DNA from: Octopus bimaculoides
Taxonomy: Eukaryota
Reading direction: 5' to 3'
Assembly (NCBI RefSeq): GCF_001194135.2
Contig: NC_068985.1
Coordinates: 31,778,658-31,842,657 of the forward strand
DNA length: 64,000 nt
Each line of letters starts with the position of its first letter. Position 1 is the stretch's first letter. Shown here piece after piece: positions 3,868 through 62,160 of the stretch. Position numbers and translations under genes: made by a program. The notes beneath the pieces were generated by a model. That model saw only the letters and a list, made by a program, of their open reading frames with translations. It had not been told where the DNA came from and did not search any database.

Positions 3868-4437
3868 AGGCGCAGGAGTGGCTATGTGGTAAGTAGCTTG
3901 CTTACCAACCACNNNNNNNNNNNNNNNNNNNNNNNNNNNNNNNNNNNNNNNNNNNNNNNNNNNNNNNNNNNNNNNNNNNNNNNNNNNNNNNNNNNNNNNN
4001 NNNNNNNNNNNNNNNNNNNNNNNNNNNNNNNNNNNNNNNNNNNNNNNNNNNNNNNNNNNNNNNNNNNNNNNNNNNNNNNNNNNNNNNNNNNNNNNNNNNN
4101 NNNNNNNNNNNNNNNNNNNNNNNNNNNNNNNNNNNNNNNNNNNNNNNNNNNNNNNNNNNNTATATATATATATATATTATAAATATATATATGTATATGT
4201 ATATATGTATGTGTGTGTGTATATGTTTGTGTGTCTGTGTTTGTCCCCACCAACATCGCTTGACAACCGATGGTGGTGTGTTTACGTCCCCGTAACTTAG
4301 CGGTTCGGCAAAAGAGACCGATAGAATAAGTACTAGGCTTACAAAGAATAAGTCCTGGGGTCGATTTGCTTGACTAAAGGCGGTGCTCCAGCATGGCCGC
4401 AGTCAACTGACTGGAACAAGTAAAAGAGTAAAAGAGT
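3868..4437 (+). mobile_element. tRNA-head SINE (family A, tail type 1)
   Basis: Head AGGCGCAGGAGTGGCTATGTGGTAAGTAGCTTGCTTACCAACC, then an N gap and (TA)n/(TG)n, then tail ...GGGGTCGATTTGCTTGACTAAAGGCGGTGCTCCAGCATGGCC...AAGTAAAAGAGTAAAAGAG. Homologous to 12064-12550, 36033-36416 and 57498-57897. Confidence 0.8.
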
Positions 4438-4699: not shown

Positions 4700-7600
4700 T
4701 TAATAATTCTCAGTTTTCATATCATTTAAGCCTAGACTTTCATTCTGTTCAAAATTCCTTTCATAATATGTGATTTTAAGGTCAGGGTCTTCTTCAGGAA
4801 AACATAAATCCTGTAGGAAAGAAAAAAAAAATTATAGCCAATTTAAGTTTAAGGCACAAATGAAGCACAAATGATTTTTAAAAAACTATTTAAGGATATT
4901 GCTGATCTATGTAAAAGGATAAATATCAATACAGAGAATGACAATGTGGTTAAGTGTGTGTGTGTGTGTTTACATATTCTCTCTGAATATTAAATACCGT
5001 GAGCTACAAGAAGTGACGTTGTTGCCATTTTCCATGTTGATAAATTATTTGCTGCCTTTGTGCCTGCAAAGATGTGTGAAATAAGGCATCCTTACTTGAG
5101 AAACTGGTAAGGATTAGCAACAGGAAGGGTATGTGGCTGTAAAACTATGTGCTTCAATAATACATTCATCTAAACCATGCTTGCATGGAAAAATTGTAAA
5201 TAATTTTGTACCAGTGGTACACTTAGAGAGAGAAAGAAAAGTGACACAAGATCACTCAGCAGCTCTGAAGAGCAGAGACTGATGGAGTAGTAGTAAAAAG
5301 AAAGAATGAGAAGACAGCACATATAGGGATTAGAGGTTAGATTATGTTGGTGAGTGACATCATGCCAATCAGCAGTGAGGCCTGAAGTTGATGAAACTCA
5401 ACTAGGTTAAAATCACAACCCTTCAGACATTATACTAACATGATCCTTCTAATTACACACAATCTCAAAACTGTTTTAGATTAAGATTATAATTATTGTG
5501 ATATTTTTTTATATTCAAGTTATAGTGATTAAATACAAATTCTGTAAAAAAAAATATATATTGGGTTGTCCGGAAAGTTTGTGCCGATTTTTAAAGGAAA
5601 GAAAAAGGTCAATAAATACTTGTCATTACATTTTTAATCAACCAAATATGAACCATTTTGTTGCACAATGCATCTCCATCTTTCCTCTAACTTGAAAATA
5701 CCCTCTTCCCAGAATTGAGGTGGTTTCATGGCAAAGAATTCATCAAGGTATCTTTTTACATCATCCAAGGAATTGAAATTTTTACCATTAAGACTATTCT
5801 GCAGAGACCTGAATAAGTGGAAATCCAAAGGAGCAATATCTGGTGAATATGGAGGGTGGAGTAACACATCCCAGCCGAGCTGCAGCAATTTTTGTCTGGT
5901 TCCCAAAGAAATNNNNNNNNNNNNNNNNNNNNNNNNNNNNNNNNNNNNNNNNNNNNNNNNNNNNNNNNNNNNNNNNNNNNNNNNNNNNNNNNNNNNNNNN
6001 NNNNNNNNNNNNNNNNNNNNNNNNNNNNNNNNNNNNNNNNNNNNNNNNNNNNNNNNNNNNNNNNNNNNNNNNNNNNNNNNNNNNNNNNNNNNNNNNNNNN
6101 NNNNNNNNNNNNNNNNNNNNNNNNNNNNNNNAAAAAAGGTGCCTTTTCATTCCGTTTATAAAGTGAATCACAGATGGAAATGCGATCCAAAAGGTTCTTC
6201 TCACTCAACTCATGTGGTACCCAAACATCGTAGCGATTTGTGTACCCAAGTTTTACCAGGTGCTCATGAACAACGGATTTTGATAGGTTGAGGCTTTCTG
6301 CCAATTCTCTGGTTGTGCAATGTGGGTTATTCTCAATTAATGACTTGATTTGGTCATCATCTGTAATGGGTGGTTTGCCTGACTGCGCTTTATCAATAAG
6401 GCTACAATCTCCAGCTCGGAACCTTGCAAACCACTTCCATACAGTTTTTTCAGATAAAGAAACATCACCGTAAACTGCGCATATTTCTTTGGTTGCTTGT
6501 GAGACTTTTTTCACTTTATGGAAAAAGAAAAGCATCAAGTGCTGAAAATGAACTTTCTAGTCTTCCATTTTAAAGGGTTACAGAATTAACACAGGTTATA
6601 GGAACATAAACCTTCTTCCACGAAAAGATAGCTTAAACTGTGTTCCAAATGGAGGTGTAGACAAATCCTATTTTATGGACTCAACCATGTTCTAAAATAA
6701 GTCGAAAGGTAAGCTACTATAAATCGGCACGAACTTTCCGGACAACTCAATACTTTACATAACATTCAATGTTTTCTGTCCTAAAACCAAAATTGTGAAT
6801 CTACTGAAAGATACATTTTTTAATGTTTTTCTTGAGCCCTAAGACTCAAAAGACCAGTCACTCAGTTCCCATGGCATACAAGTGTCTGAGATCACAACAT
6901 CCCCCTTCAACAGGATGTCACTCCATTGCAGGGTTCAAGGCCAGCAATTTTAAGGGAAGGGAACAAGTCAGTTACATCAGCCCAGTACCTGACAGGTATT
7001 TTATTTTATTGACACTGAAGGAATGAAAGGCAAAATTGACTTCAGCAAGATTTGAGCTCAGAACATAAAGAGCCAGAAGAAATGCTATATAAATATTTTG
7101 TTCAACATGCTTACAATTCTGCCAGCTGCCAGATATATTAATGAAATATTTTTCTTCAAATCTTAGATTTCTAGATGCCCTAAATACAAAAGAAAAATTA
7201 ACTCTACAGCCTTCAACTTCAAATAAATAGTTTTACAAACTTATTCTGTTTTTACATTTCCTGTGAGCCAAACTTGAGTCAGGTCTATTTCAAACCCCAA
7301 CAGTCCCATTCTTCGTTTGATGTAGTTATATATATATCATTCAGAATATGTCAGTTCTTATATTATTCTGTAACATTTAACAATTATTTTAGCTCACCTG
7401 GATATAACTATTGCCTGCAGGATCATCAAGGATCAAATGGACATTAAGCTTTTCTCCTGATATAATCTGTAGAAAAGGAAAAATTTATAAGTTTCCAACT
7501 ATCAGATCATTAAGAATGAAATGTCCAATTTTCTTATGCACCAAGTTTGACAGTCGTTAACTCTAATGTTTAATCCTGACAATTCTTTGTTTTACAAAAC

Positions 7601-10600
7601 TCATTGAAGAGTTACATCACTTTACAAAATGCAATTCATTGTGTCTGATTATATTGAGTTTTCTCTTGTTAGTCAATTTTTGTGATCCCATAGATAGATC
7701 AAAAATTCGTGTTGTTTATGAATTTGAGTCCCATCATGGAACCAATGCATTCCAGACAGCTTGAAACATCAGTGAGGTGTTTGGTGAAGATGTGGCAAAT
7801 GAGCGCACTGAACATTGATGGTTTGAGAAGCTCTAGTCTGGTGACTTTACTCTTGAAAATCAGTCCCATGGTAGACTTGAGACCAAGGTGGATAATGATG
7901 AGCTGGAAACTGTAGTGAGTTAGCAGCAAGGTTTGATGTTTTGATTCCAACTGTATTGGACCATCTGAAACAAATCAGCAAGGTAAAGAAGCTGGACAAG
8001 TGGATACCACACAAACTGAACAAGCATCAAATGACACATTGTCTTGAAACTTGCTATTCTTTGCTGTTATGGCATAAAAGCAAACCATTTTTGCATCATA
8101 TTGTTATGTATAATGAAAAATAGATTCTTAGCAAGCATTCTGCACAGTGGTTTGATAGAGATGGAGTGCCAAAACACAATCTAAAAAAGAATATTCATCA
8201 AAAAAAGTTAATACTGTCTCTTTGGTGGTCCAGCACTGGTGTCATCCACTACAGCTTCATGACAATTGGTAAGTCAATTACAATAGATGTATACATCAAC
8301 CAATTGGATGAAATTTTGAGAGAACTTGCAATTAAACAACCGAGATTGGTCAATACAGACAGACCAATACTCTTGCAAGACAATGCTCAATCACATGTTG
8401 CACAAAGAATGCTATTCAAGTTACAGGAATTGAACTTGGAAGTACTCTGTCATCTAACATATTCACCAGACCTTGCACCAACTGACTATCATGTTTTCCA
8501 GGCATTAGACAACTTTTTGCAAGAAAAAAAATTCAAATCTAAAGATGCAAAAACAGCCTTTCATGATTTCATCACTGCTTTCTCACTAGAATCCTTTACT
8601 GTTGGCATAAATAAGCTACCGATAAAATGGCAAAATTGTGTTGATAATTTAGGTACATACTTCNNNNNNNNNNNNNNNNNNNNNNNNNNNNNNNNNNNNN
8701 NNNNNNNNNNNNNNNNNNNNNNNNNNNNNNNNNNNNNNNNNNNNNNNNNNNNNNNNNNNNNNNNNNNNNNNNNNNNNNNNNNAACTACATTGCTTTTTAC
8801 TGATAAAGTAAAATTTTGAACTTACAGTTCAAAATTGGACATTTCATTCTTAATGACTTGATAATATACATCAAATATCATAGAACAAATCAAGGGAAAT
8901 ATTTTACATATGAATTATTAAAATTTTTTTTCTTGTCACAAATAAATTACTTTTACTTCAATATGATACAATATAAAACTAGAGTTTTTTTCTCTGGACT
9001 ATAGCTAGATGTTAATTTTAATTTTCATTAAAATTTTTTTTAAACTGTTTTTATATTTTAGCTTACTAACAAAAAATTGAATGAAAAGTCAATAAAAAGT
9101 ACTTTTTAATTATTTTATGGTTCAAGAAAATACAATATTTCTCATCTATGAAATTTACCCAAAATGAAACCATCAAAATTTCATTTTACTCTAAAGACGA
9201 AACCCTTAAATTGCTTACAAAACTGCGCAACAGCTGCACAGGCAATAATCACCACACCTAGAGAAAAATCATCCATCTTCACCAATTGGGAAGCACTCAT
9301 ACACCTGTGTAATGTCTGCAACGTAATTATCAGGAAATAAAGGCCTACAAGTTCTCTCTCTCTCTCTCTTTCCAAATTAAACCCAAATATTTTAAGTAAC
9401 TGGCAAGAGGATCTGTATCAAGCTAGAAAATGTCTTATATCCCTTTCCTCAAGACTTCTTAACTAAAATGACTCAATAAGTAACACAACTGTAAATAAAG
9501 GCAACCACCTATCCTGGTTATATTTTGCTTCTATTTCAACACTGCAGACACAATAAAATTCTACCTTAACTCTTTTTTCCAGCCATTTCCCCTGTCCCAT
9601 GTGCCTCACCTCTAAGTGCACAAAGCTGCCAAGTACAAACACTTTTCTAGTCACTCCAATCTAAGTAGTCCAGATAGCATTCAATCCATTCCCATCAAGC
9701 AAACAGTGCACACTTGATCTAGGTCCTATCTTCTCCAAGAAAGGCAATTTCTTTGAGTCGGTCAACTAAGGTGACCTTTAACTTTGTACAATGATGCAAA
9801 CAACTGATGTTGTGAACTGACTGGGACTATCTAAACCGAGCTTCTATCACTAGAACTTAAAAGCAGATTAGACAATGAAAAAAAAACTAGACACCCAAAC
9901 TGCCACACTGTACCCTATATAATAAACTACTGGATGTTAGAGCAAACAGTATGGTTCACTTTGAAAAATCATATCTAAAACAATAAATCTGTGGTTTGGA
10001 CCTACTCATTCAATTAATAACCCATGTGCACTCTAAAAGATATGACAACTTAATCTCTTTAACAGCACCAAAACACAGTGACTGTGCATAGCAAGAAAAC
10101 AATCTCACAATACTACATGCTCCTATTCATGAACCACAATACACAGTTCACACTATCAAAGACTGGTATTGATGTAATTTACAATAAAAGGCAATGCCCC
10201 AGTTTCATGACTAAAACTAATAAAAGAATAAAAGTATCATAAGCATTAATTTAATAGCAAAGAATAACAAGTATTAGCTTTCAATTTTTATTTACTTAAA
10301 GCAAATAGTAAAACAGTCATAAAATGTTCACCATTACAAACTGCTTCTGTCTTACTTTAAAGCTAGAAACAGTTTTACTTCAAAGTTACCAGCTGTCTAG
10401 AGATAGAGACATTTCATACAATTTAACAGGAACCTAAGTTTTTTAATATGTCTTACTGAACAGAAACTTTTCATTAATGGAACATTCACAAAAATATAGG
10501 TAAATTATTAAAAATTAAAAACTTACCTCGGAAATGTTATTACTGAATTCATTCAGTTTTGCTTTTGTATCTTCCTGAGCAGAGTCACCAAAGCAAAAGG

Positions 10601-10996
10601 GATTGTTCTTTGACAGCTTCAGAATAAAAGAGAAATATTCATGAATTTATGTTTAAGTGGATAACTGCATACAATTACAAATGTGTGTGAGTGTGTACAT
10701 TAATAAAATACAGAAAAGTTATTTGCTTTATGTATTTTGTCAAATTAACTGCCAGGATTACATAATTGTTTGTTCAAAATTATATAATCCCATCAAATCA
10801 CCAACTCAGTGTTTAGCAAAAAATACAAAAAGTGGTGTTAAGTGCTTTATATATATANNNNNNNNNNNNNNNNNNNNNNNNNNNNNNNNNNNNNNNNNNN
10901 NNNNNNNNNNNNNNNNNNNNNNNNNNNNNNNNNNNNNNNNNNNNNNNNNNATGCAAATTATCAACAACATCAATAGAGTGGTGAAACTGAAGGCAT

Positions 10997-11055
<59 letters not shown>

Positions 11056-11286
11056 TCTTTTATCTTTTTCAGTCATTAGATTGTGGCTATACTGGGGCAC
11101 AGCCTTGAAGAATTTTTAGTTGAACGAATGAATCAACCTAAGTACTTATATTTTTTTTAAAGCTTGGTATTTATTCTATTGGTCGCTTTTGCTAAACCAC
11201 TAAGTTATGGAGATATAAACACACTAACACTTGTTGTCAAGCAGTAGTGGAGGACAAAGACATACACACATATAAACATATGTAAA

Positions 11287-11317
<31 letters not shown>

Positions 11318-14300
11318 GACAGGCTTCTTTCAGTTTCCATTTACCAAATCCACTCACAAGGAGAGTAGAGGACAGTTACCCAAGGTGCTACACAGTGAGA
11401 CTGAACTTGGAACCATGTGTTTGAGAAGAAAGCTTCTTACCTCATAGCCATACCTCTGCCTATATATGTATGTGTGTGTGTGTGCGTGTGTGTAAATATA
11501 TATACGTACTCACACACACATATACCGTCATCATCATTTGTGTTCCAGTTTTGGCATCACACAATAGTTGTAAATGAGCATCACCATTATACAAGCAATA
11601 CCATTTATTTCCAGTCTTCTGTGAAACCACATCTCATCACGAGAAAATATATATTACCTTGCTTGGAAACAGATGGAGTTTTACAATAGATAAGGCAACT
11701 TAGCCTTACCTGATGGCCTTATCACAGAAAATTTGCGTCAATGAATTCTGTCTAACCCATGTTAGCTTTGTGAAAAGTAATGAGGTTTTGGCAAATTCTT
11801 CTCATAAAAACTGCTTGGTTAGTGATATACATGATTACAAGAAAATCCATAAAAAAAAATTTAGATAAGAATTAAGTTAGTTTTGTTTTCTTTCTTTCTT
11901 TAAATATTCTAATATTTCCTGAAGAAAATTATGCTTATGTCCATCTAGTATAATCCACCGTAAGAAAGGTTTAAGTTTTAAAACATCACCTTTGTACAGT
12001 ACTTACATTGGCTGACATTTGATTTAGTGGTAAAAAAAAAAAAAATTTAAAAAAAAAACACTATAGGCACAGAAGTGGCTGTGTGGTAAGTAGCTTGCTT
12101 ACCAACCACATGGTTCCGGGTTCATTCCCACTGCGTGGCACCTTGGGCAAGTGTCTTCTACTATAGCCTCGCGCCGACCAAAGCCTTGTGAGTGGATTTG
12201 GTAGACGGAAACTGAAAGAAGCCCATCGTATATATGTATATATATANNNNNNNNNNNNNNNNNNNNNNNNNNNNNNNNNNNNNNNNNNNNNNNNNNNNNN
12301 NNNNNNNNNNNNNNNNTGTGTGTGTGTGTGTGTATGTTTGTGTCTGTGTTTGTCCCACTAGCATCGCTTGACAACCGATGGTGGTGTGTTTACGTCCCCG
12401 TAACTTAGCGGTTCGGCAAAAGAGATTGATAGAATAAGTACTAGGCTTCCAAAGAATAAGTCTGGGGTTGATTTGCTCGACTAAAAGGCAGTGCTCCAGC
12501 TTGGCCACAGTCAAATGACTGAAACAAGTAAAAGAGTATAAAAGAGTATACTTTCATTTCTTTCATTGTAAATCATTTTTCAGCCTACATTTGGTAAAAG
12601 TAAAACAAAATTCCTTGACTTACTGAGTCCTTTATATCAGTAAGTAAACCTTCAACTGTTGTAAACTTTCCTCCTAAAGAACCAATCGTAGCTTCAAGGT
12701 CAAGTTCTGGAATAGAAATGCTGCTGGTTTCACTCTGTAATAGACAAAAGCAATTCATCATTAGTTAAAGATGCAATAATTGGCAAACATATTTTGAATT
12801 ATCATCAAGTAAAACAATTTTATATATTTGAAAACATGTCATAACTCATTTACGTGATTAAATATTTCAATAAACTAGGATAGCTATATTAAAAGTGATG
12901 TCAGAAAATAGTTATCTAAAGAGGAAATTTCTAAATTCAGTTTCATACAAAATGTTACAACCAACGTTTTCAGAGTGTTAAAATAAAATTAAAAAACTGA
13001 TAAAGATTAATTTCAATCAATGAATGAGAATAAATTCTCAAAATTACATTAAGAAAACTAAAGAAGTAATTAAAAAACAAAGAAAATGTGTACCTTCAAG
13101 ACATCTCGAGACAGATCAGAAATTGTTCGTATTCTCAAATCCAAGTGTTTCCCTTTTGGTTCTATGGCACCACTACTTTTAACTTCATTATCACGATGGC
13201 CACATTGATCACAAGTTGTAGCCATTATAACAACTTCCTTAAAGTGAGGAATATCTAGCAGAGTTAAGGTGATGGCATTAACAAATAGCAGTTATTTATT
13301 TCAGAGAAAGATTTTTAATTTGTAAAAGTTGTAATAGCTTCTTCAACACTATCAACATGTGAGTTTCTATATATGTGTGTATATATGTATATGTGTGCAT
13401 AATTTATATTGACAGATTACAAAACTATTTTTATCAATAATCCTCTTAACTATCATTCCAAAAGAAAGTTGTAAGGCTCAGAAAAAATGTTTTGCTCTTT
13501 AGCTGTTGCTTCTATTAATGCCATATTTGTTTTACTTTTTCCTCTTTCCTTTACTTTTTCACTTTTCTCTATAATATTTTGCAATGTTTAGAAAAAATTA
13601 TTACTTTATGCATTAGCCTTTATTCTAAAATGCAACTCATCACCAGAATAAAACACAATATTTATTTAGTAAAATATATCTTACTTAATAAACTTTAGCT
13701 ATTTAGCAAATGTAGAAAAGGAAATATTTAATTAAATTTTATTAAAATAAAAGGATACTGATTAATTTCATGTTAGTAGAACACAATGCATTGCAGTTAG
13801 GACAATTTATGTCAAAGGATAACACCTGCAATAAAAGAAATATAACAGAATATATCAATTTATGTCAAGCCAGTCACAAGCTTCGTTTCCAAATATCATC
13901 ACAAGAAAATACTTCAAAATACAAACATTTCTTACAAATAATAATTTTCAAACAACATTTTAGACAATAAATATTTAGTAGAAACATCTGTTGCTCTACT
14001 CTCACACCCTAATGAACTTATCACCCACCCATCCTAATCTTCTGTCCATACTTTCTCATACTCACTTTCTTGTAAATTATAATTGTGGGTAGGAAGAATT
14101 GGCCATATCATTTAATATGAGGTTTCTGGTGTAAGCCACAGTAAGAATGACAAGAAAAGAACAGGTTGATGCATTTAAGTAGGTGTGGGCAAGAGTAATA
14201 CACAACTTGATAGCTCAGAAGAGTAGGAACTGTCACAATAACAGAAGAAAGAAAGAAAAGAGATGGTATGTTGGAAAGATGATTGGGCTTCCAATTTTTT

Positions 14301-17300
14301 TTAAATTGGTGAATTCTTTTATATATTTTAGATGCTATTAAATGAGACAAGTTCATCATGCTTCCTTTGACATAACAACCTTTGAAGTTCATTGCTCATA
14401 GAAGTGGGGCTGACGTGGATGGAGCTAACAAAGTTAAATGTGGATGATGTTTGTATAGACAAGGTTATGGAGAAGTGAAGGGTGGAATTGTGGCATCATT
14501 TGCACAGAAATATGTTTAATTAGAAGTGACAATATTCTTTGTAATTTTGGCACAAGGCCAGCAACTTTGAGGGAAGAGGGAAAGTCAATTACATCAACCC
14601 CAAATGGATGAAAGGCAAAGTTGACTTTGGTCGGATTTGAACTCAGAACCTAAAAAATTGGAAGAAATGCTACTAAGTATTGTGTCTGTCACATTAATGA
14701 TTTTGCCAGTTTGCCACCAACAATGTGGAACCCTAAAGTATGCCAGCATTCAAAGATTGTGACTTGGACAGCTTCTAGTCAATACACTCTCTGCTGGGAA
14801 AATTTAGAAATGAAAAATTGATGGAACCCAAAGGCAGAAAAATCTCATACTAAATATGGTCAATACTAAATGTGTTCATTTGATATCAAGATAATTAATA
14901 TTTTTTTTTTTTGTCAAAGTTCTCAAGAGATAACAACCACAAAGGTTAAGCATTCAAAATCAAACACTGAAGGAATTGGCAAGGCAGAAGCTGTAGGTGG
15001 TCACTAAAAAGGGAAAGACATTTAAAATAATAAAGTAGGTAAATTTAACATAATCAGGAGATGAAACTTTCACCAAAAATAGCTGCAAGTGGTAGATTTT
15101 AAATAACAAACGACACCTCCTTTCAGAAGAAAATTTGGAACTGATGTAGCCTGGATAGGAAAAGATAGGAGCTGGATGTTATATGTTTCAGAGAAAAATT
15201 GTATGTATGTGATTTGCATATTAATAGGAGGTAGTTTGCAGGGTCAAGGATGAAGGAAATTTCCTGAACACTGGTGTAAACACACACACACACATTTAGG
15301 ATCTTTGCATAAGAAATTTTATATAAAGTGTGTTGAAATTTAATTTTGTAATGAATTATTTCTATATACCTCATCTTTAAGGTTCAAAGTACTGTCAGCA
15401 GGAATTCCAGCACTTGCAACAACACTCCGATCATCTTCTTCAGGCTATAAATTATATGTAATACAAAGAAACAGAAATATTACAATGATATACAATAAAA
15501 AATTAGAGAGAAAAGTGTATCAAATAAAAGGAAACAACAACAATATCACCAATAATAATTTCTCAAACAAAAGTTTCCATATACTCAAGAAAGTATTTCC
15601 TCTAAATCATAAGACAATGAAAAGAGGTTATATTTTCTTTAAAATACACTGAAACCCTTACTGCAGCCATTGTGTCTCATGTCTCCCACCCTGCTATAAA
15701 CCTGAAGAAATTCAAGCTGAATGTAAACTTACTTGACCTTAATAGTATAAATAAGCCTGCAAAAAAGGCTTGGTCACTCCTCCTTGCAGGAAAATGTAAA
15801 GAAAAGGCTGACCAGCACAACTGAGCAATAAGTACATTGTAATATCAGTAACAAGGTTCTGAACAACTTAAGCATAACAAAAGGATCCAAAGTGTGTGGT
15901 AAGAGGTTTATTTCCCAACCACATGGTTTCAGGTTCAGTCCCACTGCATGGCACCTTGGGTGTTTTCTACTATAGCCTGGGTCAACCAAAGCTTTGTGAG
16001 TGGATTTGGTAGTCAGATACAGAAATAGCCCATCACTTGAGTGTGTGTGTTTGCAAGTGTGAATGTGTGTATTTGTATCTCCTTGTCTTAATATTGTGTG
16101 ACAGTTGTAAAGTGTTACTATCACACCAGCAATGTCATCATTTTGCAATATTCTGTGCAAACATGTCTAGCCTTAAGGTAAATAATCTTGGAAACAGGTG
16201 AGAGTTGGCAGCAGGAAGGGTATCCAGCCATAGAAAGTCTGCCTCAATAAGCTCCATTCAACCCACACAAGCATGGAAAAGTGGGCATTATGATGATGAT
16301 GATGATTATGAATATAAATATCAGTGGAAATAAAAATTACTCACTGGTATGCCAAGTGATACATTCTGTTCAGCAGACCTTTTAAAGTTGTGCACAACCA
16401 TTTCTGTATCTTTGTTTGGAGCATGAGTGGAAAAGTAGATTAAGGATCAATAAATGGAATGAAGAGAGATTTGCTTTTCATAAATACTGTACACTGTGAA
16501 AAATGTGCCATATGTATTTGAGTATATTTAATACATACTACAAAGGAAATGAGCATTAAGATGATAAAATGTTGTTTGTTTATTATACTAATCACAAAAG
16601 TGTAAAATGAACAATAGTTATTTTTTTATCCTTTCAAGAATATGACTTTCATTTCTATCTACCCAAAGTTAACAAAATTTGTACTTAGCACCTATGAACC
16701 ATGACTAGAAGAGCCTCTACAATTAGAATTAGCAATCCCATCCTACTCTTCTAAAAAATAGAAAAAAAAAGAGGACACATTGAATAATGTAATCCTAAAT
16801 ACACTATGCTTGAATAAAGATTCCAGGTTCTGAGTTCAAAGTTCTTCATGCCTGATGTCTGTTCATTCATGTGGACAATTAGTGCAGCAATATATCAGAC
16901 TATCCTCAGACAAGAGACATGGTCCAAATGCTTGCAATATAGTGGATTTGACTAAAAGCCAGCCGCTGGCATTGAAACAGGTGACATATTAAGTCTACCA
17001 CACAAAGGACGAAGCAATTAGGGTTTTATAGCATTTTGATCACTCCTGATGTAACTGTCACAAAGCTCATCATCATCATTTACCATCCATTTACTATGCT
17101 GGCATGGGTTAGACAGTTTGACTGGAACTGGTAAGCTAGGTTTCTACAGATGGATGCCCTTCCTAACACCAACCACTCCAAGGGTGTAGTGAGTGCCTTT
17201 TTTATATGTCACTGGCTCTGTCCACGACTACGATATCACTGGGCTTGACAGTCTTCTCAAGCACAGGAAATCGCCAGAGGTCTCAATCATTTGTCATCAC

Positions 17301-20300
17301 CTCCATGAAACAACAGTTCAAAATGATGATAGTGAGGGAGGCTGGGATGCATAATGTATCTATATCCACATTTGGATCTCTCATCCAATATACCCCTGTC
17401 GAGTCTACACCTGTCTCCCCATTTCTTTGATACCCTCTTATCTATCACTCTTCCTCTCTTCTATTTGCTATACTATGCTTCCTGTCTAATACTCTTTTCA
17501 CTCGGGCCAGTCACACGGTACTGGCAACATCCACGCTCAAAATGGTGGTTTTTACGTGCCACCTGCACAGGAGCCAGTCCAGCGGCACTGGCAATGACCT
17601 TGCTCGAATGATTTTCTAACGTGCCAGTAAGGCGATGCTGGTAACGATCATGCTCAAATGGTTCTATTTATATGCCACTAGCACAGAAGCCAGACAGCTG
17701 CTCTGGCAATGTTCACGCTCGGACGGTGCTGTTAGTACTCTACTGGCACAGGTGCCGGTCATCGAATATGGTTCAATTACGATTTCGATTTCACTTGTCC
17801 CAACAGGTCTTCGCAAGCAGTGTTTAGTGTCCAATGAAGGAGAGGTTGGCATGGGTGCCAGTCGTCAAATTTGGTTCAATTTCGATTTCAATTCACTTGC
17901 CTCAACAGGTCTTCGCATACGAATAAGTGAGTTGACTACACTTCTGGCAGAGGCCACAGATTATGCTCTCAATTGGCTTGCTGGGTCTTTTCACATACTG
18001 CATATTTCCAAAGGTCCCGGTCACTAGTCATTGCCTCGGTGAGGCCTAAAGTTCAAAGGTCGTGCTTCACCATCTCATCCCAGCACACTCTTCCCCGCTA
18101 CTAACTTCGTCACCTAGATAGCGGAAGCTATCAACTACTTCTAGTTTTTCTCCCTGGAATGTGGCAAAGGTTGTTTTCTGCACATTTTCAGTGTTTATTG
18201 CTCCTGAGCATCTGCCACATTCAAAAATTATCTTGCTAGTTAGCCTTCCTTTGATATTGCTGCACCTCTTATGTGTCCATAGCTTACACTGGGTACAACT
18301 TATGGAGTTTCTACCTACGCCTTTTCTGCAGATTGAGCAGCGCCATCTACCTGAAGTGGTTTGTGTTTTGTCTACCTTTCTGCTTATTAGGACTTTGGTT
18401 TTAGCTAGGTTGACTCTAAGGCCCTTTGATTCTAGTCCTTGCTTCCACTTTTAGCTAGGTTGACTCTAAGGCCCTTCGATTCTAGTCCTTGCTTCCACCA
18501 CTCGTATTCAATAATCCCTTATCATTCCCCCCTCTCACCTATCATGAGATCACTGTATAAGGGATTGCAATGGATTTGTTTGACCCCAATACATTTACCA
18601 TATCCCTTTCTATAACTGCCAGTTATCACACCCTCTCTCCCAAACCTCTTGTTATTGACAACTATCACACCCTCTTACTTTCTATCTACTTCTATTACTA
18701 TCTATCACTCTCTCATCCCCTCTACCAGACTTTCATCCCTCTCACTCAGTTTCTACCATCATATTCCAGTTCTCTTCACTTGAGTGTTTTGTTCTTCTGT
18801 CGTTACTGCTCTTCCATTCACCTTACCTCGAGTAGACAAATTCATCATAGAGTAGTGAGGACTCATTAATCTCACAGGGTACAATGCAATCTCAATAGTG
18901 CTTGTACCACGAGCTATATGCACCCAGTTCACTCTGTAAAATGGCAGTGTGGGAGTGAGAAGACATTTTTAGTACAATGGAGGACATCATAACCTCTCTA
19001 GTTTTAGTGCCATGTTAAAAGCACCGAGAACACCATGAAGTAGTTGGCATTAAGAAGGGATCTAGCATAGAAATCAAGTCAAAAATGAAAGGTACAAGTG
19101 ATACATGGCCATCAAACATATCTACAAGGGCAGTAACTTCAAACAGTAGCTAACATGGAGCATTACAACCTCTCCAACACATGTAAACATGTGAAATGGA
19201 CATAAATATATGGTTGGATATATATAGAGAGAGAGAGTGGGGAAGAGAGAGGAATGTGATTCACATCTCTTTTGAGTAAAATGCTGTATGTATAGCTTGT
19301 ACGAAAGACACAATACTAGTTAGTTGAGTATCTGGATTGAGATAGGTAGGGGAAGTAACTGCACTAACATGTGATATGAATAGATAACAAATACTGAATG
19401 GAAGGTACTTGTGACAGAGAATGACCAAAACATGGGGAATAACGGTGGTGGTGGTGGCTGTGGTAGTGGCAATTGCATAAGATTTCAGGATGTTTGGTAT
19501 CACAGGCAAGCTGACACAAGAATAATGGATATTAATATCATCTTTGCTTAATGGAAGTTATGTTTATTAGAGATTAGGTTTTTTGCAGGAAATCAAAGGA
19601 AAATAGCATTTCTGAAATGATTCCTAAGAAAATGTATCATTAGGAAAAGAGTATATCTTTAAAGGATATGGATTCTCCACAAAGCTGTTACCACTGGGAT
19701 CATCAATAATCTGAAATAAAAAATATTCATTAAATACTTGCTTAAAAAATATATAATTTTTCAGATAGCACACACAAAATATACATAAGTTCGTTATAGC
19801 TTTTAATGCTTTACAAGTACATATATGTATACATAAACACCATGACCACTTAAATATTGCATAACCAGAGCTAAGAAATGTAGTTCAGCTGTTAGGTAAA
19901 CTACACATTCTCAAACAAATTCCAATCAATGATCTACCATTAAATATATTTTTCCCTTTGTATCTTCTAATGTTCAACCCTTCTCGATTAGCTAATACTA
20001 TTCATTTCTCACTTAAACTCACTCAATGTAGTCGTCTTTGTAACCTCTATTATTATTCATATATAATTTTTTTAATACTTACAAGTGTAAATGGTTCTTC
20101 CATTTCAAGAAGTTTCTTCAACTTAATGACAAATGCATCTAATTGTTCTGCTAATTCAGGATGTTGTATCTAGAGAAAAAGAAAACAAATATGATAAAAT
20201 AAGTTTGTTTAGACAATAGTATCAAATTTGGATACAAAGCCAGTAATTTTAGAGAAGTGGTTAAATCCTTTGCATCAACTCTCCAGGGTTCAACTACAAC

Positions 20301-31629: not shown

Positions 31630-32336
31630 TGCGCTGACAACCCTGGGGGTGGGGAGGGGACTTTCGGAAAATTCACAAGATCTGATTTTTCTGCCATAAC
31701 TTCGGGTAAAATGGATATATATTGATTTTTTTTTTTACAAAATCCCACATTTTTGGTTATGGAGGATCCGATTCTGAAAAAAATTTGCTTGTAAAATTTC
31801 AATTTTTCAACAAGGAAAATATATATATATATANNNNNNNNNNNNNNNNNNNNNNNNNNNNNNNNNNNNNNNNNNNNNNNNNNNNNNNNNNNNNNNNNNN
31901 NNNNNNNNNNNNNNNNNNNNNNNNNNNNNNNNNNNNNNNNNNNNNNNNNNTTTTTTTTTTTTTTTTTTTTGCGAAATACGTAGAAAAATACGAAGATTAC
32001 GATTCTGAAAAAAATTTGCTTGTAAAATTTCAATTTTTCAACAAGGAAAATATATATATATATATATATATATATACACTCAGGCCTTCAAGCAGGCTAT
32101 CCACATGCTAGAAATAACAGCCAAATCTCACAAAACTGCGATAACTTAATGAAATTTTGAGAATGAGATTTTTGGAAATTTTTTTTCAGAATTGGATCCT
32201 CTATAATCAAAAACGTGGGGTTCCATAAAAAAAAAATCAATATATATCCATTTTACCCGAATTTATGACGGAAAAATCGGATCTTGTGAATTTTCCGAAA
32301 GTCCCATCCCCACCACCCCAGAGTCGTCAGCGAGCA
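31630..32336. mobile_element. Fold-back/MITE element with ~155-bp terminal inverted repeats
   Basis: 31630-31783 is the reverse complement, with scattered mismatches, of 32179-32336. The ORF track shows EKSDLVNFPKVPSPPP on both strands. The interior contains an N gap. Confidence 0.85.
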
Positions 32337-34965: not shown

Positions 34966-36010
34966 TCATCATCATCATCATCATCGTTTAACGTCCGCTT
35001 TCCATGCTAGCATGGGTTGGACGATTTGACTGAGGACTGGTGCAACCGGATGGCTACACCAGGCTCCAATCTAATTTGGCAGAGTTTCTACAGCTGGATG
35101 CCCTTCCGAACGCCAACCACTCAGAGAGTGTAGTGGGTGCTTTTACGTGTCACCCGCACGAAAACGGCCACGCTCGAAATGGTGTCTTTTATGTGCCACC
35201 CGCACAAGAGCCAGTCCAGGGGCACTGGCAACGATCTCGCTCGAAAACCCTACAAGGCCAGTCAGGCGGTACTGGCAACGGTCACGCNNNNNNNNNNNNN
35301 NNNNNNNNNNNNNNNNNNNNNNNNNNNNNNNNNNNNNNNNNNNNNNNNNNNNNNNNNNNNNNNNNNNNNNNNNNNNNNNNNNNNNNNNNNNNNNNNNNNN
35401 NNNNNNNNNNNNNNNNNNNNNNNNNNNNNNNNNNNNNNNNNNNNNNNNNNNNNNNNNNNNNNNNNNNNNNNNNNNNNNNNNNNNNNNNNNNNNNNNNNNN
35501 NNNNNNNNNNNNNNNNNNNNNNNNNNNNNNNNNNNNNNNNNNNNNNNNNNNNNNNNNNNNNNNNNNNNNNNNNNNNNNNNNNNNNNNNNNNNNNNNNNNN
35601 NNNNNNNNNNNNNNNNNNNNNNNNNNNNNNNNNNNNNNNNNNNNNNNNNNNNNNNNNNNNNNNNNNNNNNNNNNNNNNNNNNNNNNNNNNNNNNNNNNNN
35701 NNNNNNNNNNNNNNNNNNNNNNNNNNNNNNNNNNNNNNNNNNNNNNNNNNNNNNNNNNNNNNNNNNNNNNNNNNNNNNNNNNNNNNNNNNNNNNNNNNNN
35801 NNNNNNNNNNNNNNNNNNNNNNNNNNNNNNNNNNNNNNNNNNNNNNNNNNNNNNNNNNNNNNNNNNNNNNNNNNNNNNNNNNNNNNNNNNNNNNNNNNNN
35901 NNNNNNNNNAACTACCTCTAGTTTTTCTCCCTGGAATGAGATACAAGTTGTTTCCTGTTTGTTTACAGTGTTTATTGCACCTGAACATCTGCCACATACA
36001 AAGACTAACT
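34966..36010 (-). mobile_element. 5'-truncated RTE LINE (tail, gap, ORF piece)
   Basis: Young tail 34966-35287, N gap, then an ORF piece 35910-36010 homologous to 18140-18240 (..[20 protein letters not shown]). Confidence 0.75.
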
Positions 36011-39182: not shown

Positions 39183-42100
39183 ATGGGTAATGTAAATGCA
39201 GCATCACAACCTCCATCAACGGCGGTACCACCGTTATTAACACCACCGCCACCTGCACCACCTAAAGAACCGGCACAAACTTCTGGGCTTTCTGGAGGTC
39301 CCCCATCAGAAATTCCCCTAACAAATTTTCCTGACAATCCTGGAACTTTTGAAGATCTCCATAAAAAATGCAAAGGTAAAAGAATTGTAAACGAAACCCG
39401 TTGGTTTTCTTGGGTTTGATTTCTATGACCGTCTCACCTTGGATATGACCCGGTGTAATTCGACCCTGTTCTTATATTAACTTGGTATTCACTCTCTAAA
39501 ACATCCTTCAGTATATCATTCACGTTCTGTAAATTGATTAATATTATTGGCTTCGTGTTAAATACTAGAATTATTTTAGTATTACCTTTTGTTTTTCATG
39601 CTAACGCCTATATAATTACTGTAGTTTATTACTATATGTAAATGTAGTGTTCTGACCTATAAACTTTTTCTATAAGGTAAAATGTAAACGGGCTTCTCCA
39701 GTTCATTGTAAAAATAGCAACTTTTAGGTTACATGCTTCTTGTTAGCTCTCGATAATTTTGTGTTTCGCTCGGTGATATTACCATCGTTAATTCAAATAA
39801 ATTTATTTTTTATGATATATTACTATTTAGTTGCACAATCCTGTTGTTTCTCTCCCTACCACTCACTTTATTTTCTCGACCTTCTTCAATGATCCCAAGT
39901 TTCGTATTTTTTAGTGCAAGAAAAAAAATCGATATTTTGTTATTTTAGCTTACTTTCTGTTATATAATTTATACATTAAAATGTGTAGTCTTTCAAAATA
40001 CCGAAAGATTTGGGGGAGAACAAATGATTTGACACTTTAAAATATTGTAGCCTTCTGCATAATGTAATTATCATCTGTTGCTCTCTTTAAAGGTAATTTG
40101 TATATATTAGTCTCAACAAAATATATATTGCCGAAGAATTATTTCTTATGAATTCCAATTAAAAAAATAAAACGTGGGATAATTTTATTGTCAAACCGTC
40201 GTTTATGGAATAAGTACTTAATTATATATTAATGCTATATATGGTGCTTATTTATACATTACGTCTCTGGATATATTTCCTGCATTTAATATAAGTTCAC
40301 CGGCTAAACATTACACTATCTTCCATTCCCAAATATTAAAGTTTAACACTTTCCGTGTAGTATAGCTGACTTTAGAATACATAATTGATTTGTTCTCTGA
40401 GAAACTTTTTTATTTCGAAGATACTCTGAATTGATTTTCCATCGGTGAATTCGAGCTCGCACATCAAGTTAATGAAATACTCCTTAGTTATGCAATATAT
40501 ATGTTGTTCTTACGGAAATGAGATATGTGTCAACATTTGGGTGGACTGGGTCAATCAAGAAATACTAACTCTAATGGGATGATAAACGTAGACTTGACGG
40601 TCACTAGGCCTATACCTAAACGACTTAGCTGCAATTCCTAGCACCTTATTGATATCAATCAACATCGTCTTTCGTCTTGTAACAAATTGAGCCCAGATAT
40701 TCTAGACTACACAGAAAGATACATCTTGCTCTTGAACAAGATATGTGGATAAGTTCGCTCCTGAAACGTGCACCAGTATTTAGTTAAGCGTGAAAGATTT
40801 TTTTAAAACTGGAATGGAAGTTAATAACTGGTGTTTTTACAATGGGTGTCTACTTGGCACAGTGAAGGTGGAAAATGTAGACNNNNNNNNNNNNNNNNNN
40901 NNNNNNNNNNNNNNNNNNNNNNNNNNNNNNNNNNNNNNNNNNNNNNNNNNNNNNNNNNNNNNNNNNNNNNNNNNNNNNNNNNNNNNNNNNNNNNNNNNNN
41001 NNNNNNNNNNNNNNNNNTAAAGAGAGCTATAATACAATTTTAGAGGCAACGCAAAATAAATAAAACCTTTGGAAATGTGCTGTGCGTGAGAAAACCTGGC
41101 AAGCCAAGTAAGATCGTTGTCAGTGCCCCTGGACTGGCTCTTGTGCGGGTGGCACATGAGATGCACCATTTTGAGCGTGGCCGTTGCCAGTATCGCCTGA
41201 CTGGCCTTCGTGCAGGTGACACGTAAAAGCACCTACTACACTCTCTGAGTGGTTGGCGTTAGGAAGAGCATCCAGCTGTAGAAACTCTGCCAAATTTAGA
41301 TTGGAGCCTGGTGTTGCCATCCGGTTTCACCAGTCCTCAGTCAAATCGTCCAACCCATGCTAGCATGGAAAGCGGACGTTAAGCGATGATGATGATGATT
41401 TAGGGCTTACCCGTAATATAACTCTCAGATCCGTTTGTCATAATCCTCATATTTCATTCATTGTGCTAATGTCTAGCATAAATATTGAATATCATTGTGG
41501 TTTACTACTATATACTATCTAGCTATTAAAATAAAAGACAGACATAGATAAAATGAAGTTTATTGCACTAGACCAGTTCAGTCAGGACAGTACTACTTTC
41601 TGTAAGAAACAAGAGTATTTACCAATTTTTGTGGAAATCATTTGGCAACACTTGAGCAAAAGGCACAACACTGAATGTTGCGAAGTTAGTCACTAATCTC
41701 CATTAAACTGGTGCATTTTAGTTCTGTTTCTTTCTAACTCTGATTTTTTAATGTTTTTATCCTGTCACCATTTAACAAGGTAAAATTGATATACGACCAC
41801 CAAGAATTATATATATGATGGCAATTAGAGTATGGGTGCAACTTTGAGATAAATATCATGGGGTGGTTTTTTGTCATTTATAAACAATGTTTAGTCTCAG
41901 TAATAATATAAGCTGTATTCAAATGTCAGTCTTTGGAAATTTGCCTCACTAAATTGAAATAAAATTAAGATTGATATTATAGAAATTAATATATGTATGT
42001 TTAGCAGCTTGCTAGGGATAAGCAGTTTTGGTTAGTAGGTGAATTCATTTAAGATAAACAGATGATGTTGATGTTACATCACATGGAAGTTTCATTGGGT

Positions 42101-45100
42101 TATAGTGATTAAAAAAAAAAAAAAACTCAAGCGAAAGTCAGACATGGTAAAGAATTTATGAAAAAATTTTGAATTTAAGAAGTTTCCTCTGATCAGGGAG
42201 AAAGTGTAATTTGTATGTTACTGTTTTCATTAAGAAATCAGTGCTCATTGAATTTAGCTTTATCTAAGTGAAATACCTACTATTAAAAGCTCACATCCAT
42301 TTTGTTGCTGTAAGGAGAGGTGATGTTCATTTATCACTTACAAGGCATGCATGTTTGTTTCAGATACGTCTCGCTGAATAAAGTGCCAATCATAAAATGT
42401 TTTTTAACATATTTTTTGTTTTTAAGAATTACTTTTGAAAAATAAAGTACAAATTATTAAATACAATTTTTGGCAGGACCTTCCTGCACATTTATATATT
42501 TAAAAAAATTTATTTGCTTGCACACAATTTTATGTGCATAGAAGTTATTTTTGTAAGGTACTATAAATGCTTTGTTTTTGTTATGCAGTTGCAATTAATC
42601 TATGATGATGCTACAGAAATAAGTTAGATGAGCATAATATGAAGTTGGCAACCATTTCCCTTGACTATATTTGTTCTCTGTAAATAACAGATGATTATTG
42701 TAGTATTTTTTGGTACTGTAGTTGCTGGCTTGTTTTTGTGAGTTGTGTTTATAATAATGAGTTTTTGGAAAAGGATATATGTCACATTGATCAGTATTTA
42801 TTGGAATGTATTTTTATGGACCTTTGAAAATGAAAGATAAATCAAGCTTCATGAAATTTGAAGTAAAAATGTGAGAGATCAAGCTAAATATCACAAGGTA
42901 TTTAGTTTATGGTTTTTAGTACACTGTTGCCTTAATAATAATAATTTGTTACATTCAATTAGAAAGGGTAATTTATTTCAGGTGATGTCTTGACTAAATT
43001 ACTTGTGTAATTAATGTATGTTTCCTCTCGATACTAATCCTTCAGTTGAATTAACATATTAAAATGTATTCCTTTTGGGCATTTTAAAGGTAATTGTATT
43101 AGGATTAGAATCTATAAGTTCTTGGAGAGGGGGCGATTTTTTTTTTTTATCCATCCATATGATCACTGTAAGTAATCAAGTTCGTAAAGTTTCTTTCTCA
43201 TTTTAATTTGTGAAAGATCAGCCATTAGTTAACAGTTTATGACCCATTATTGTTTTCTTGCATTAGTATATGTTTGTTCATTAGTACATAAATGTGTTCT
43301 TATACTTCAGATGTATTTCCTCAAGTGTTCGAAGGTGGGAAGCTGATTATTTCCAAAGGTTTAAGCAGTCATTTTCAAATCAGCCATACTTTGTCTATGA
43401 GTACATTCCAGTCAACTGGATATCGGTTTGGAGGAACATATGTTGGTACCAAAATGTACAGTGCTCAAGAGGTAAAGAGGTTACATCTATGAAGATGCTT
43501 TCTTTTCATTGTATGTATTGTATCCTAAAGATACAGTGTAAGGAGTTACATTGATGTAATATTACTACTTTACACATCAGACTGGAGATTTTGATTCAGT
43601 TTTGTTTAAGTTGCTTTAGATGGCAATTTATCTTCTTAACATTAAACCAGCCAAATATGGGGGACCATAACACAATGCTTTTTGTTCACTGACCATGAAT
43701 GGCTACATTTCCATGTTAACTTTCATAGCAGAAGACTTTTATAAATTCGTCCCTTTTGTCTTAGATTGGTTGTTTTTATGTGAATACATCTACATTTAAC
43801 ACCAGATGTTATGAATATAAATTTAAGGCATGAAACGTTTATATTCCTTTTGATTATGTTTGAACATACAAGTAATCTGTGCTAAGGTTTGTGTTGCTAT
43901 GATTTTATAGCTAGACTTTTAATCCTCCTGATATCAAAATATATCTTCCTTGGTGGAAACAGTATGATTGCTATTCCCTCTTATCATACATTTGTTTTTC
44001 CATTGCATCTTGTTAGTGCGGGGTCAATACTCTGCATGTGTACATATGTCTATATATATAAAATGTTACCCAGACTTAAGTTTTTTTTTTCGGTGAGATG
44101 CATAAGACAAAATAGTAATTTTTTTTTTAATGGAAGCATTGTATCATTTAAAACTTATTTTCAGCCTTTATAAAAGTTAAGATGGACATTTGATTCAGTG
44201 TTCTTGTTTCCTTTTATAGGCTTACCCTGTTCTTATTGGTGATACTGATGCTTCTGGTAATATGAATGCAAACATTATACATCAATTTACTGAAAGACTT
44301 CGAGGGAAATTTGTTGCCCAAGTAAGTGTCAGTTCTCAATATTTATTGTTTTAATGAAGAGTAATAGAGGTGTGCTTTCGAGGGTTTTGTTGTGCTGAAA
44401 TAAATAAATGAAATGATGCTGCTTTCTTTATTTAGATCCAGAACAGCAAGTGGCTGGCCACACAATGTGCTGTGGATTATAAAGGCAATAATTTCACTGG
44501 TTCTTGTACTCTTGGAAATATAGATATTGTTAATGAATCTGGTAAGTAACATATTTATTTTTCGTTTCTATAGATTTATGAACAATAAACAATTTTAACA
44601 AAATTATTGAAGCCAAATTTGATCATCAAGATAAGATTTTGATCTTCCGTAACTTTTCTAGTGGCTTTCTTTTCTATTGTTTTCAAATCTATCAGCTATA
44701 TTATATAGAAGTAGATTGATTTAATTTTTCAAAATATTTCATTTGGAGCTTTAGTATATAAAAACTAACTCTTATCTAATAAATGAAAGCTTTTTAGATA
44801 CAGTTGTCTTATAAATTATCCAAGGAAAAGAAACTAAAAGCCAAAATCTACAATACATTCAAAATCAGTTAGTCATAGCATGGAAGGTAGTGGCATCCAG
44901 TGATACTAATGCTAATTGTTGCTACCCTTTAGGATACATTTGAGTTGTCAGCTACCAATTTTTTGTGCTTTGTTTCATCAGAGTTTGTAGATTTGTACTT
45001 GATAAACGTTTTCACTTTTTCATTTGGATGTATCATGACAAGTTTCAAATTGGAATTGAGATATCTTTTGTTATAATTCCATTTCTGTACCCACAGATTA

Positions 45101-51315: not shown

Positions 51316-52160
51316 CGGTGACGGAGAACTACACTAGTGGTGTGCAGCTTGACGGAGAAAGCCTGTGCAATCTGAGATACACCAATGACACAACCCTCAT
51401 AAGTAACAGCAAGGACGAATTGCTGCATATGATACACAAAGTGAAAGACATGAGTGCACAGAGTGACCTATTCCTGAATGTAAAGATGACAAAGATCTTG
51501 GTGGTGGATAAGTACAGGACAGACCAAGGTGACTTCACCGTAGACGGAGAGATGATTCGGGAAGTGGATGATTTTGTGTACTTGGGATCCACAATCAGCA
51601 CCAGTGGAACAAGCACACCAGAGATATGGAGAAGGCTCGCGATAGCGAGGCAAGCGGTACAAGATATGGAGAACATCTGGAAGAGTCGTGGCGTGTCAAT
51701 GCTGCTGAAGATAAGGCTACTTCGGGCTGTCACTTTCTCTATTGCAGCGTATGGCTGCAAGTCGTTGACAATGTTGAAGGCAGACGAGAAAAGAGTGAAC
51801 GCTTTTGAAATGTGGTGTTACCGCAGAATCCTTAGTGTCATGGACGGAGAGAAGGACAAACAACTGTGTACTAGAAAAGCTCGGTTGCAAGATGACACTT
51901 CGGCGAAACATCATGAAGTGGAAGCTACGGTTCTTTGGCCACGTCATGCGCTAGGATGGACTTGAGCAAACGATCATAACTGGCAAGGTGAACGGCAGAC
52001 GTAAAAGGGGCAGTCCACCCACTTCTTGGCTGAAAGACATCGCAGCCACAGGATTGTCTTTATTCTCAGCTGTCCTTGGGGTAGAAAACAGGAGAAGGTG
52101 GCAAGATATCATGATGACCACAGCATCGCATAATGTGACACCTGACTAGAGAGAAGAAGC
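51316..52160 (+). mobile_element. 5'-truncated RTE/BovB-clade LINE, RT C-terminal half; a different family from the PHD-RTE
   Basis: ORF 51318-51965: NLRYTND (degenerate YADD), LNVKMTKIL, EVDDFVYLGS, EIWRRLAIAR, KIRLLRAVTFSIAAYGC, NAFEMWCYRRIL. Higher GC than flanks. Confidence 0.88.
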
Positions 52161-61257: not shown

Positions 61258-62160
61258 GTGTCCTCTTCCACAGGTACCCTGAACCACTAGGCTGTGGCAC
61301 TTTTTCACACAGCTATCCTCATCCATTCTCGCCAAATGACCATACCAGTGCAATTGCCTCTCTTGCACATCACAACTGACGCTTCTTAGGTCCAACTTTT
61401 CTCTCAAGGTACTTACACTCTGTCGAGTATGCACACTGACATTTCACAGCCATCAGAGCATACTGGCTTCATTGCTTGGGAGCTTACGTATGTCCTCAGC
61501 AGTCACGGCCCACGTTTCACTGCCATGTAGCATGGCTGTTCGTACACATGCGTCATACAGTTTGCCTTTTACTCTGAGTGAGAGGCCTTTGTCACCAGCA
61601 GAGGTAAGAGCTCTCTGAACTTTGCTCAGGCTATTCTTATTCTAGCAGCTACACTTTCAGCGTACCCTCCCCCGTTACTTGTAGTTTTTCTCCCTGGAAT
61701 ATGGCAGAAGTCGTTCTCTGCACATTTTCAGTGTTTATTGCTCCTGAGCATCTGCCACATACAAAATCTATCTTGCTAGTTAGCCTTCCTTTGATATTGC
61801 TGCACCTCTTATGTGTCCATAGCTTACACTGGGTACATCTTATAGAGTTTCTATCTACGCCTTTTCTANNNNNNNNNNNNNNNNNNNNNNNNNNNNNNNN
61901 NNNNNNNNNNNNNNNNNNNNNNNNNNNNNNNNNNNNNNNNNNNNNNNNNNNNNNNNNNNNNNNNCCTGAAGGGGTTTGTGGTTTGTCTACCTTCCTACTT
62001 ATTAGGACTTCAGTTTTAGCTAGGTTGACTCTAAGGCCCTTCGATTCTAATCCTTGCTTCCACACCTGAAACTTCTCCTCTAGTTCTGATAGTGACTCAG
62101 CAATTAGAGCAAGGTCATCAGCATAGAGGAGCTCCCAGGGGCATCCTGTCTTGAATTCCT
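61258..62160 (-). mobile_element. PHD-type RTE LINE fragment
   Basis: PWELLYADDLALIAE (intact YADD, ~62095-62140), [72 protein letters not shown]. Confidence 0.85.

Follow-up and report, generated by a model that had tools for sequence, protein, structure and literature searches.

The stretch of Octopus bimaculoides DNA analysed here (64,000 nucleotides (nt) of contig NC_068985.1, positions 31,778,658 to 31,842,657; hereafter the window, always meant at its full length) carries a ZPR1 gene on its minus strand. Two of the 13 introns of this gene, intron 6 with AT-AC ends and intron 9 with GT-AG ends, are in our judgement genuine U12-type introns of octopod ZPR1 that would be excised by the minor spliceosome (probability about 0.93). 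The features that carry this reading are as follows, in window positions; here and below a slash within a sequence marks a splice junction.

19669-16427, minus strand: intron 6, AT-AC, U12-type, 3243 nt, phase 2, splitting the Pro codon in ENP/HAP
19669-19661, minus strand: U12-type 5' splice site of intron 6, ATATCCTTT, exactly at the exon end
16446-16439, minus strand: U12-type branch-point sequence of intron 6, TCCTTAAT, its 3'-most A 13 nt from the intron end
13758-13255, minus strand: intron 9, GT-AG, U12-type, 504 nt, phase 1
13758-13750, minus strand: U12-type 5' splice site of intron 9, GTATCCTTT, exactly at the exon end
13269-13263, minus strand: branch-point sequence of intron 9, CCTTAAC, its 3'-most A 9 nt from the AG end

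U12-type introns are defined by strong conservation of the 5' splice site and of the branch site, by a branch site lying close to the 3' splice site, and by AT-AC or GT-AG termini (PMC3584512). Introns 6 and 9 fit this definition. Both open with the rigid donor (A/G)TATCCTT(T), both have a TCCTTAAC-like sequence near the 3' end, neither mixes its termini, and in both the signals are kept at orthologous positions in distant species. The preliminary description of the window had called both introns U12-type, one AT-AC and one GT-AG, and the consensus donors and branch motifs at the exon boundaries bear this out.

Gene model and class assignment of introns 6 and 9

On the minus strand, exon 6 reads ...GTGGAGAATCC up to intron 6 and is followed by ATATCCTTTAAAG from 19669. 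The intron opens with ATATCCTTTAAA and closes with ...TTGATCCTTAATCTACTTTTCCAC, and the exon sequence past 16427 is TCATGCTCCAAAC. Splicing gives ...NSFVENP/HAPNKD..., and retention of the intron adds 15 codons and then TAG, in agreement with the stop within 15 codons described previously. The coordinates, motifs and AT-AC ends first given for intron 6 also stand, but the 12-nt spacer does not: 10 nt separate TCCTTAAT from the AC, and 12 are obtained only when the AC is counted. Within 45 nt we found no in-frame, stop-free GT-AG or GC-AG pair that would replace this junction without the loss of 11-16 conserved residues. The donor matches the U1-type consensus GTAAGT at two of six positions, and the 3' region has a longest pyrimidine run of 7 nt and a pyrimidine fraction of 0.76, partly contributed by the branch motif.

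AT-AC termini also occur in rare U2-type introns of sodium-channel genes, which have G at position +5 and are without the TCCTT core (PMC2831892). Intron 6 resembles these in its termini only; the C at +5 and the full U12 consensus rule out this class.

Intron 9 opens with GTATCCTTTTAT at 13758 and closes with ...CACCTTAACTCTGCTAG at 13255, following the pattern GTATCCTTTT...CCTTAAC-TCTGCTAG. Its coordinates, donor, CCTTAAC motif and GT-AG ends are, on the minus strand, as claimed in the preliminary description. The splice product is ...NMKLI/NIPHFKEV..., and retention would add five codons before TAA. The donor has A, not G, at position -1 and matches GTAAGT at three of six positions; the 3' region has a pyrimidine fraction of 0.64 with no run longer than 4 nt.

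The remaining 11 introns of the gene have a U2-type look. Their donors are GT[AG]AG-like and match GTAAGT at 4-6 of six positions, with the exception of GTACAC in intron 10 (3 of 6), and no branch motif was found near the 3' end of any of them. Pyrimidine fractions in the AT-rich U2-type introns of this gene range from 0.56 to 0.84.

The motifs are uninformative by count. The 9-mer RTATCCTTT has three copies in the window against 1.96 expected, which is no enrichment, and RTATCCTT has seven, mostly without exon context, at a per-site frequency of 5.5e-5. It is the placement at exon ends that carries the evidence. For a fixed acceptor, the chance that CCTTAAY falls within the 9 nt allowed for its placement is 8.4e-4, and donor and branch motif would occur jointly at fixed exon ends with a probability of about 5e-8 per intron, so that about 6e-7 such introns are expected over 13, and two are observed. 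The third copy of ATATCCTTT (42770-42778, minus strand) was rejected as a splice site for want of an open reading frame (ORF) or exon-like context, the 9-mer count being at chance level; the four other RTATCCTT copies, which likewise lack an exon setting and are no more numerous than chance predicts, were also rejected.

The coding region of ZPR1 spans 26888-4700 on the minus strand, in 14 exons with a coding sequence of 1323 nt for 440 amino acids (aa). Exons were searched by tblastn with an approximate ZPR1 query used as a guide only, and their boundaries were then set from the DNA itself; the 75-nt exon 8 was found by eye, and with it included the numbering of introns 6 and 9 used in the preliminary description proves right. 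The exons are:

26888-26778, minus strand: exon 1, gene model
25565-25404, minus strand: exon 2, gene model
23044-22960, minus strand: exon 3, gene model
21078-21008, minus strand: exon 4, gene model
20169-20083, minus strand: exon 5, gene model
19710-19670, minus strand: exon 6, 41 nt, 13 residues plus CC, the first two bases of the split Pro codon
16426-16345, minus strand: exon 7, 82 nt, (P) plus 27 residues
15444-15370, minus strand: exon 8, 75 nt, found by eye, donor GTATAT
13825-13759, minus strand: exon 9, 67 nt, 22 residues
13254-13094, minus strand: exon 10, 161 nt, 54 residues
12734-12624, minus strand: exon 11, gene model
10616-10527, minus strand: exon 12, gene model
7466-7398, minus strand: exon 13, gene model
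4810-4700, minus strand: exon 14, gene model

The spliced protein contains two Zn_ribbon_ZPR1 domains (Pfam PF03367 twice, E = 2.3e-51) and two jr-ZPR1 jelly-roll domains (Pfam PF22794 twice, E = 2.3e-85), that is, the zinc ribbon and jelly-roll module of the ZPR1 family, two in tandem. Residues 26-428 of the 440 align with the crystal structure of mouse ZPR1 (PDB 2QKD; E = 3e-140). The identification of the gene as ZPR1 is confirmed by these domains and this match. The alignment has zero gaps at the intron 6 and intron 9 junctions, as shown for exons 9 and 10 by tnmkliniphfkev in the window and tnmklvqiphfkev in the mouse, so both splices restore conserved ZPR1 sequence, as had been proposed. 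A 74-aa exon peptide used as a homolog query returned four fragments only, and the full spliced protein was used instead. The nearest database protein is ZPR1 of Octopus vulgaris (92%), followed by that of Argonauta hians (82%), and nucleotide identity to the O. vulgaris ZPR1 locus is 88-93%.

Orthologous positions and the history of the two introns

We compared ZPR1 loci of eleven named species. The annotated protein was threaded exactly onto the genomic DNA, which places junctions at nucleotide resolution, and intron positions were compared on a protein alignment. For the crinoid Anneissia, threading was incomplete owing to N gaps; the readable parts are a GTATCCTTTT donor at the intron 9 position and an intronless ENP site. 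The species sampled include an acorn worm (Glandiceps), a shark (Callorhinchus), a marsupial (Macrotis), an amphioxus (Branchiostoma) and a legume (Canavalia).

At the intron 9 position, in phase 1, GTATC[CT]TT is found in 10 species from octopus to legume. In the window, O. vulgaris, Argonauta, Haliotis, Crassostrea, Branchiostoma, Glandiceps, Callorhinchus and Macrotis, this donor is paired with a TCCTTAAC-like motif that lies 8-14 nt before the AG; the 9-nt branch distance of intron 9, although short, is within this span. Canavalia has the GTATCCTTTT donor; the motif scan found no clear branch sequence in its intron, where by eye only a weaker GCTTGAC can be made out, some 10 nt before the AG. 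The position is intronless in the crab Scylla and the fungus Ambispora. By this comparison, plants and animals have both kept intron 9, an ancient U12 intron, in one codon and one phase.

At the intron 6 position, in phase 2 within the Pro codon of ENP, six named species have an AT-AC intron with ATATCCTT and TCCTT[AG]A[CT]: the octopus of the window, O. vulgaris, Argonauta, Haliotis, Crassostrea and Branchiostoma. These introns are 107-3243 nt long, so the signals are kept although lengths differ widely across lineages. The same site is intronless in Glandiceps, Anneissia, Callorhinchus, Macrotis, Scylla and Ambispora. In Canavalia gladiata, the same Pro codon is interrupted in the same phase by a U2-type GT-AG intron (GTAAGAGAGT...GAATAG, donor GTAAGA) of 3835 nt (5499-9333 of its locus). 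Because AT-AC introns occur both in molluscs and in amphioxus, a cephalochordate, intron 6 must, judging from the sampled loci, be a second old U12 intron, at least as old as the bilaterian ancestor. By its distribution, it was later precisely deleted in vertebrates, ambulacrarians and at least one arthropod (the crab). A bias from U12-type to U2-type introns is known, especially in plants (PMC2426677, PMC2831892), and the legume intron suggests such a conversion at this site.

A search of metagenome contigs for the pattern NSFxEN-CC/ATATCCTT recovered three more ZPR1 genes with complete AT-AC introns, one of them bivalve-like and two with metazoan-looking proteins; a fourth match was a chance match and was discarded. 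The GT-AG U12 intron is also present in both metagenome contigs long enough to show that position. JAAUYG010308000.1 and JAAUXT010063593.1, with a contig GC content of 0.41-0.53, encode ZPR1 proteins about 55-61% identical to those of molluscs and fish; both have the AT-AC intron, and JAAUXT010063593.1 the GT-AG U12 intron as well.

The idea that introns 6 and 9, or introns 6 and 13, are twins at matching places in the duplicated halves of ZPR1 was rejected. Intron 13 comes after the Q of NSYIQ in phase 0 and is U2-type; between intron 1 and IPFF there are 9 residues, but between intron 9 and IPHF there is 1.

The preliminary description held that AT-AC ends are often mis-modelled in annotation. 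This was not the rule for ZPR1: of five public models compared, those of O. vulgaris, Argonauta, Crassostrea and Branchiostoma place the AT-AC junction in consensus register, and only that of Haliotis rufescens appears shifted. Its model (locus 10438-13440) splices TCCAT/ATCC...CAC/ATG, which gives ENPYAP and is 2 nt off register. In the consensus register, TCC/ATATCCTT...GGTAC/ACATG, the product reads ENPHAP, and so do the H. asinina and H. rubra proteins. The public model is thus probably misplaced by 2 nt and offers annotators a concrete example of an apparent AT-AC shift that alters one residue.

ZPR1 is documented as a minor-intron gene in human (ZPR1/ZNF259), mouse (Zpr1/Zfp259) and maize (GRMZM2G351582), and intron 9 matches the vertebrate position and phase; the gene is therefore not new in this respect, as the preliminary description had allowed it might be. 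In the vertebrates sampled, only one ZPR1 intron is U12-like, and intron 9 corresponds to it; intron 9 is therefore very probably the U12 intron already described in human, mouse and maize. We found no discussion of an AT-AC ZPR1 intron in the literature searched, and no mention of ZPR1/ZNF259 in the text and one supplement searched of the evolutionary literature on U12 introns. A pan-eukaryotic survey of minor introns takes in an octopus and finds molluscs relatively rich in them (PMC10639083), and genome-wide surveys report that mollusc orthologs of human minor introns are mostly minor too (PMC10639083, PMC11347168).

Dependence on minor splicing and alternative readings

Both introns would be removed by the minor pathway. 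The U11/U12 di-snRNP (a pair of small nuclear ribonucleoproteins, snRNPs) would bind first, U11 recognising the rigid 5' splice site (A/G)TATCCTTT and U12 the TCCTTAAY branch site. U4atac/U6atac.U5 would join next, U6atac would take over the 5' splice site from U11, and the 3' splice site, AC or AG, would be selected by its short distance from the branch A. Recognition by U11/U12, exchange with U6atac and a 3' site set by distance are established features of this pathway.

Since a stop follows within 5-15 codons if either intron is retained, full-length ZPR1 would be made only after two separate minor-splicing events. Human cells with a knock-out of RBM48, a minor-spliceosome protein, retain the ZPR1 U12 intron, as do maize rbm48 mutants. 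A rate-limiting or regulatory role for introns 6 and 9 would be conjecture, and the regulatory idea put forward in the preliminary description is unsupported.

Several points weigh against U12-dependent removal of both introns and the history given above. The branch A of intron 9, 9 nt from the 3' splice site, is nearer than the published optimum of 11-13 nt for U12 introns (PMC3584512). With its pyrimidine fraction of 0.76, intron 6 does not clearly lack a polypyrimidine tract. That the junctions are used in this octopus is deduced from the conserved protein and from the public models of related species. A search with Rfam found no minor small nuclear RNA gene, and no RNA gene at all, in the window, so the presence of the machinery rests on the literature. 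A single plant was sampled, and its intron at the intron 6 site may reflect conversion or an independent history.

A broader reading holds that both U12 introns date to the common ancestor of plants and animals, the GT-AG intron being still U12-type in both and the AT-AC intron at ENP/xAP having turned U2-type in plants, and that in molluscs, amphioxus and other marine invertebrates the pair has been selected as a throttle linking ZPR1 level to minor-spliceosome capacity, possibly with a loop through SMN. We regard this combination as unlikely.

A feedback loop as such, the inference made in the preliminary description, is decidedly unlikely. ZPR1 binds SMN and SMN builds snRNPs, so that a ZPR1 gene with two U12 introns might sense or amplify minor-spliceosome capacity. 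The retention seen in the human and maize RBM48 mutants indicates that ZPR1 mRNA does depend on minor splicing, and two U12 introns, each with an early stop if retained, would double that dependence. However, when SMN was depleted in mouse NB2a cells, the U12 intron of Zfp259 was not clearly retained, and the transcript level was apparently unaffected (PMC4601534). Zpr1 is absent from the main text of an RNA-sequencing study of U12 introns in spinal muscular atrophy mice, and the literature searched yielded no evidence for a specific need for ZPR1 in minor-snRNP assembly. Moreover, intron 6 has been lost in vertebrates, ambulacrarians and the crab, and both introns in the crab and the fungus; such repeated loss implies that the arrangement with two U12 introns is dispensable. 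If true, SMN feedback would be relevant to the biology of spinal muscular atrophy, but the sole direct test found, that in mouse cells, was negative.

It is very unlikely that intron 9 is a "minor-like" or hybrid intron spliced by the major spliceosome, with intron 6 alone truly U12-dependent. GT-AG termini suit both spliceosomes, the 9-nt branch distance falls under the U12 optimum, and intermediate intron classes have been described (PMC11347168). However, a perfect GTATCCTTT donor, with A at -1 and its poor match to GTAAGT, is joined to a CCTTAAC motif and a 3' region without a long pyrimidine run. The U12 donor is also kept from legume to marsupial, and the human and maize counterpart responds to the loss of a minor-spliceosome protein. 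Almost no credence can be given to an artefact of the gene model, in which the AT-AC junction is unused and the locus is a pseudogene or undergoes cryptic GT-AG splicing: the junctions in this octopus are read from genomic sequence, but the 440-aa ORF is intact and 92% identical to O. vulgaris ZPR1, each GT-AG or GC-AG alternative for intron 6 carries the cost in conserved residues given above, and the AT-AC junction recurs in independently annotated genes of five other species (shifted in the H. rufescens model). Removal of both introns by the minor spliceosome accordingly remains the reading we adopt.

Neighbouring sequence and comparison with known systems

Elsewhere in the window, remnants of Mariner/Mos1-type transposases lie at 5756-6538 (minus strand) in ZPR1 intron 13 and at 8166-8819 (plus strand) in intron 12, with matches to HTH_48 (E = 9e-16) and Transposase_1 (E = 5.5e-17); both are broken by N runs. 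The window has ten N runs, 2241 bases in all, which are assembly gaps or masked repeats. Three are in ZPR1 introns 11-13 and one is just downstream of the ZPR1 stop; none is in the exons or in introns 6 and 9. The N runs are:

3913-4160: N run
5913-6131: N run
8664-8782: N run
10858-10950: N run
12247-12316: N run
31834-31950: N run
35288-35909: N run
40883-41017: N run
60178-60699: N run
61869-61964: N run

An ORF at 39183-39419 (plus strand) starts with MGNVNAAS... (an N-terminal Met-Gly), is proline-rich and ends with ...PGTFEDLHKKCKG; it has no Pfam match and could belong to a neighbouring gene as its first exon. Retroelement-like fragments occur at 51318-51965 (plus strand) and 61649-62065 (minus strand), with a weak reverse-transcriptase match (E = 0.009) and a PHD-finger-like stretch (E = 1.4e-5). 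Among the loci used for comparison, a Porin_3 (VDAC-like) gene stands head-to-head just upstream of ZPR1 in Glandiceps (locus 1-467) and Anneissia (locus 1-778), which suggests conserved microsynteny in these two ambulacrarian loci.

The pattern seen in octopus ZPR1 is one of textbook U12 retention, loss and conversion, and the call is an ordinary one. It adds to the catalogue a well-supported gene with two U12 introns, at one position of which the U12 intron has been kept in some lineages, deleted in others and is U2-type in a plant; beyond cataloguing, it is of little importance.

Compared with the canonical AT-AC U12 class (5' ATATCCTT, branch TCCTTAAC), intron 6 agrees in its ATATCCTTT donor, its TCCTTAAT branch sequence, its AT-AC termini and its 13-nt spacing. 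Nothing structural sets it apart; the difference is that its site is empty in vertebrates. The three states at this site, AT-AC U12, U2-type GT-AG and no intron, recall the histories treated by Lin et al. 2010 (PMC2831892) and Basu et al. 2008 (PMC2426677). The species sampled here differ in showing no GT-AG U12 intermediate at the site, and the direction of change, for which one plant was sampled, is taken from that literature.

Intron 9 interrupts the second zinc ribbon in phase 1, after NMKxx and before IP[HYF]FKEV, at the codon that also holds the only U12-like ZPR1 intron of the shark, the marsupial and the legume, and all four have the GTATC[CT]TT donor. Through these three loci, intron 9 is taken to be equivalent to the published intron of human, mouse and maize. 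The octopus gene differs from vertebrate ZPR1 in having a second U12 intron, which vertebrate genes are without. Invertebrate ZPR1 of this kind would thus depend on minor splicing at two steps, and vertebrate ZPR1 at one.

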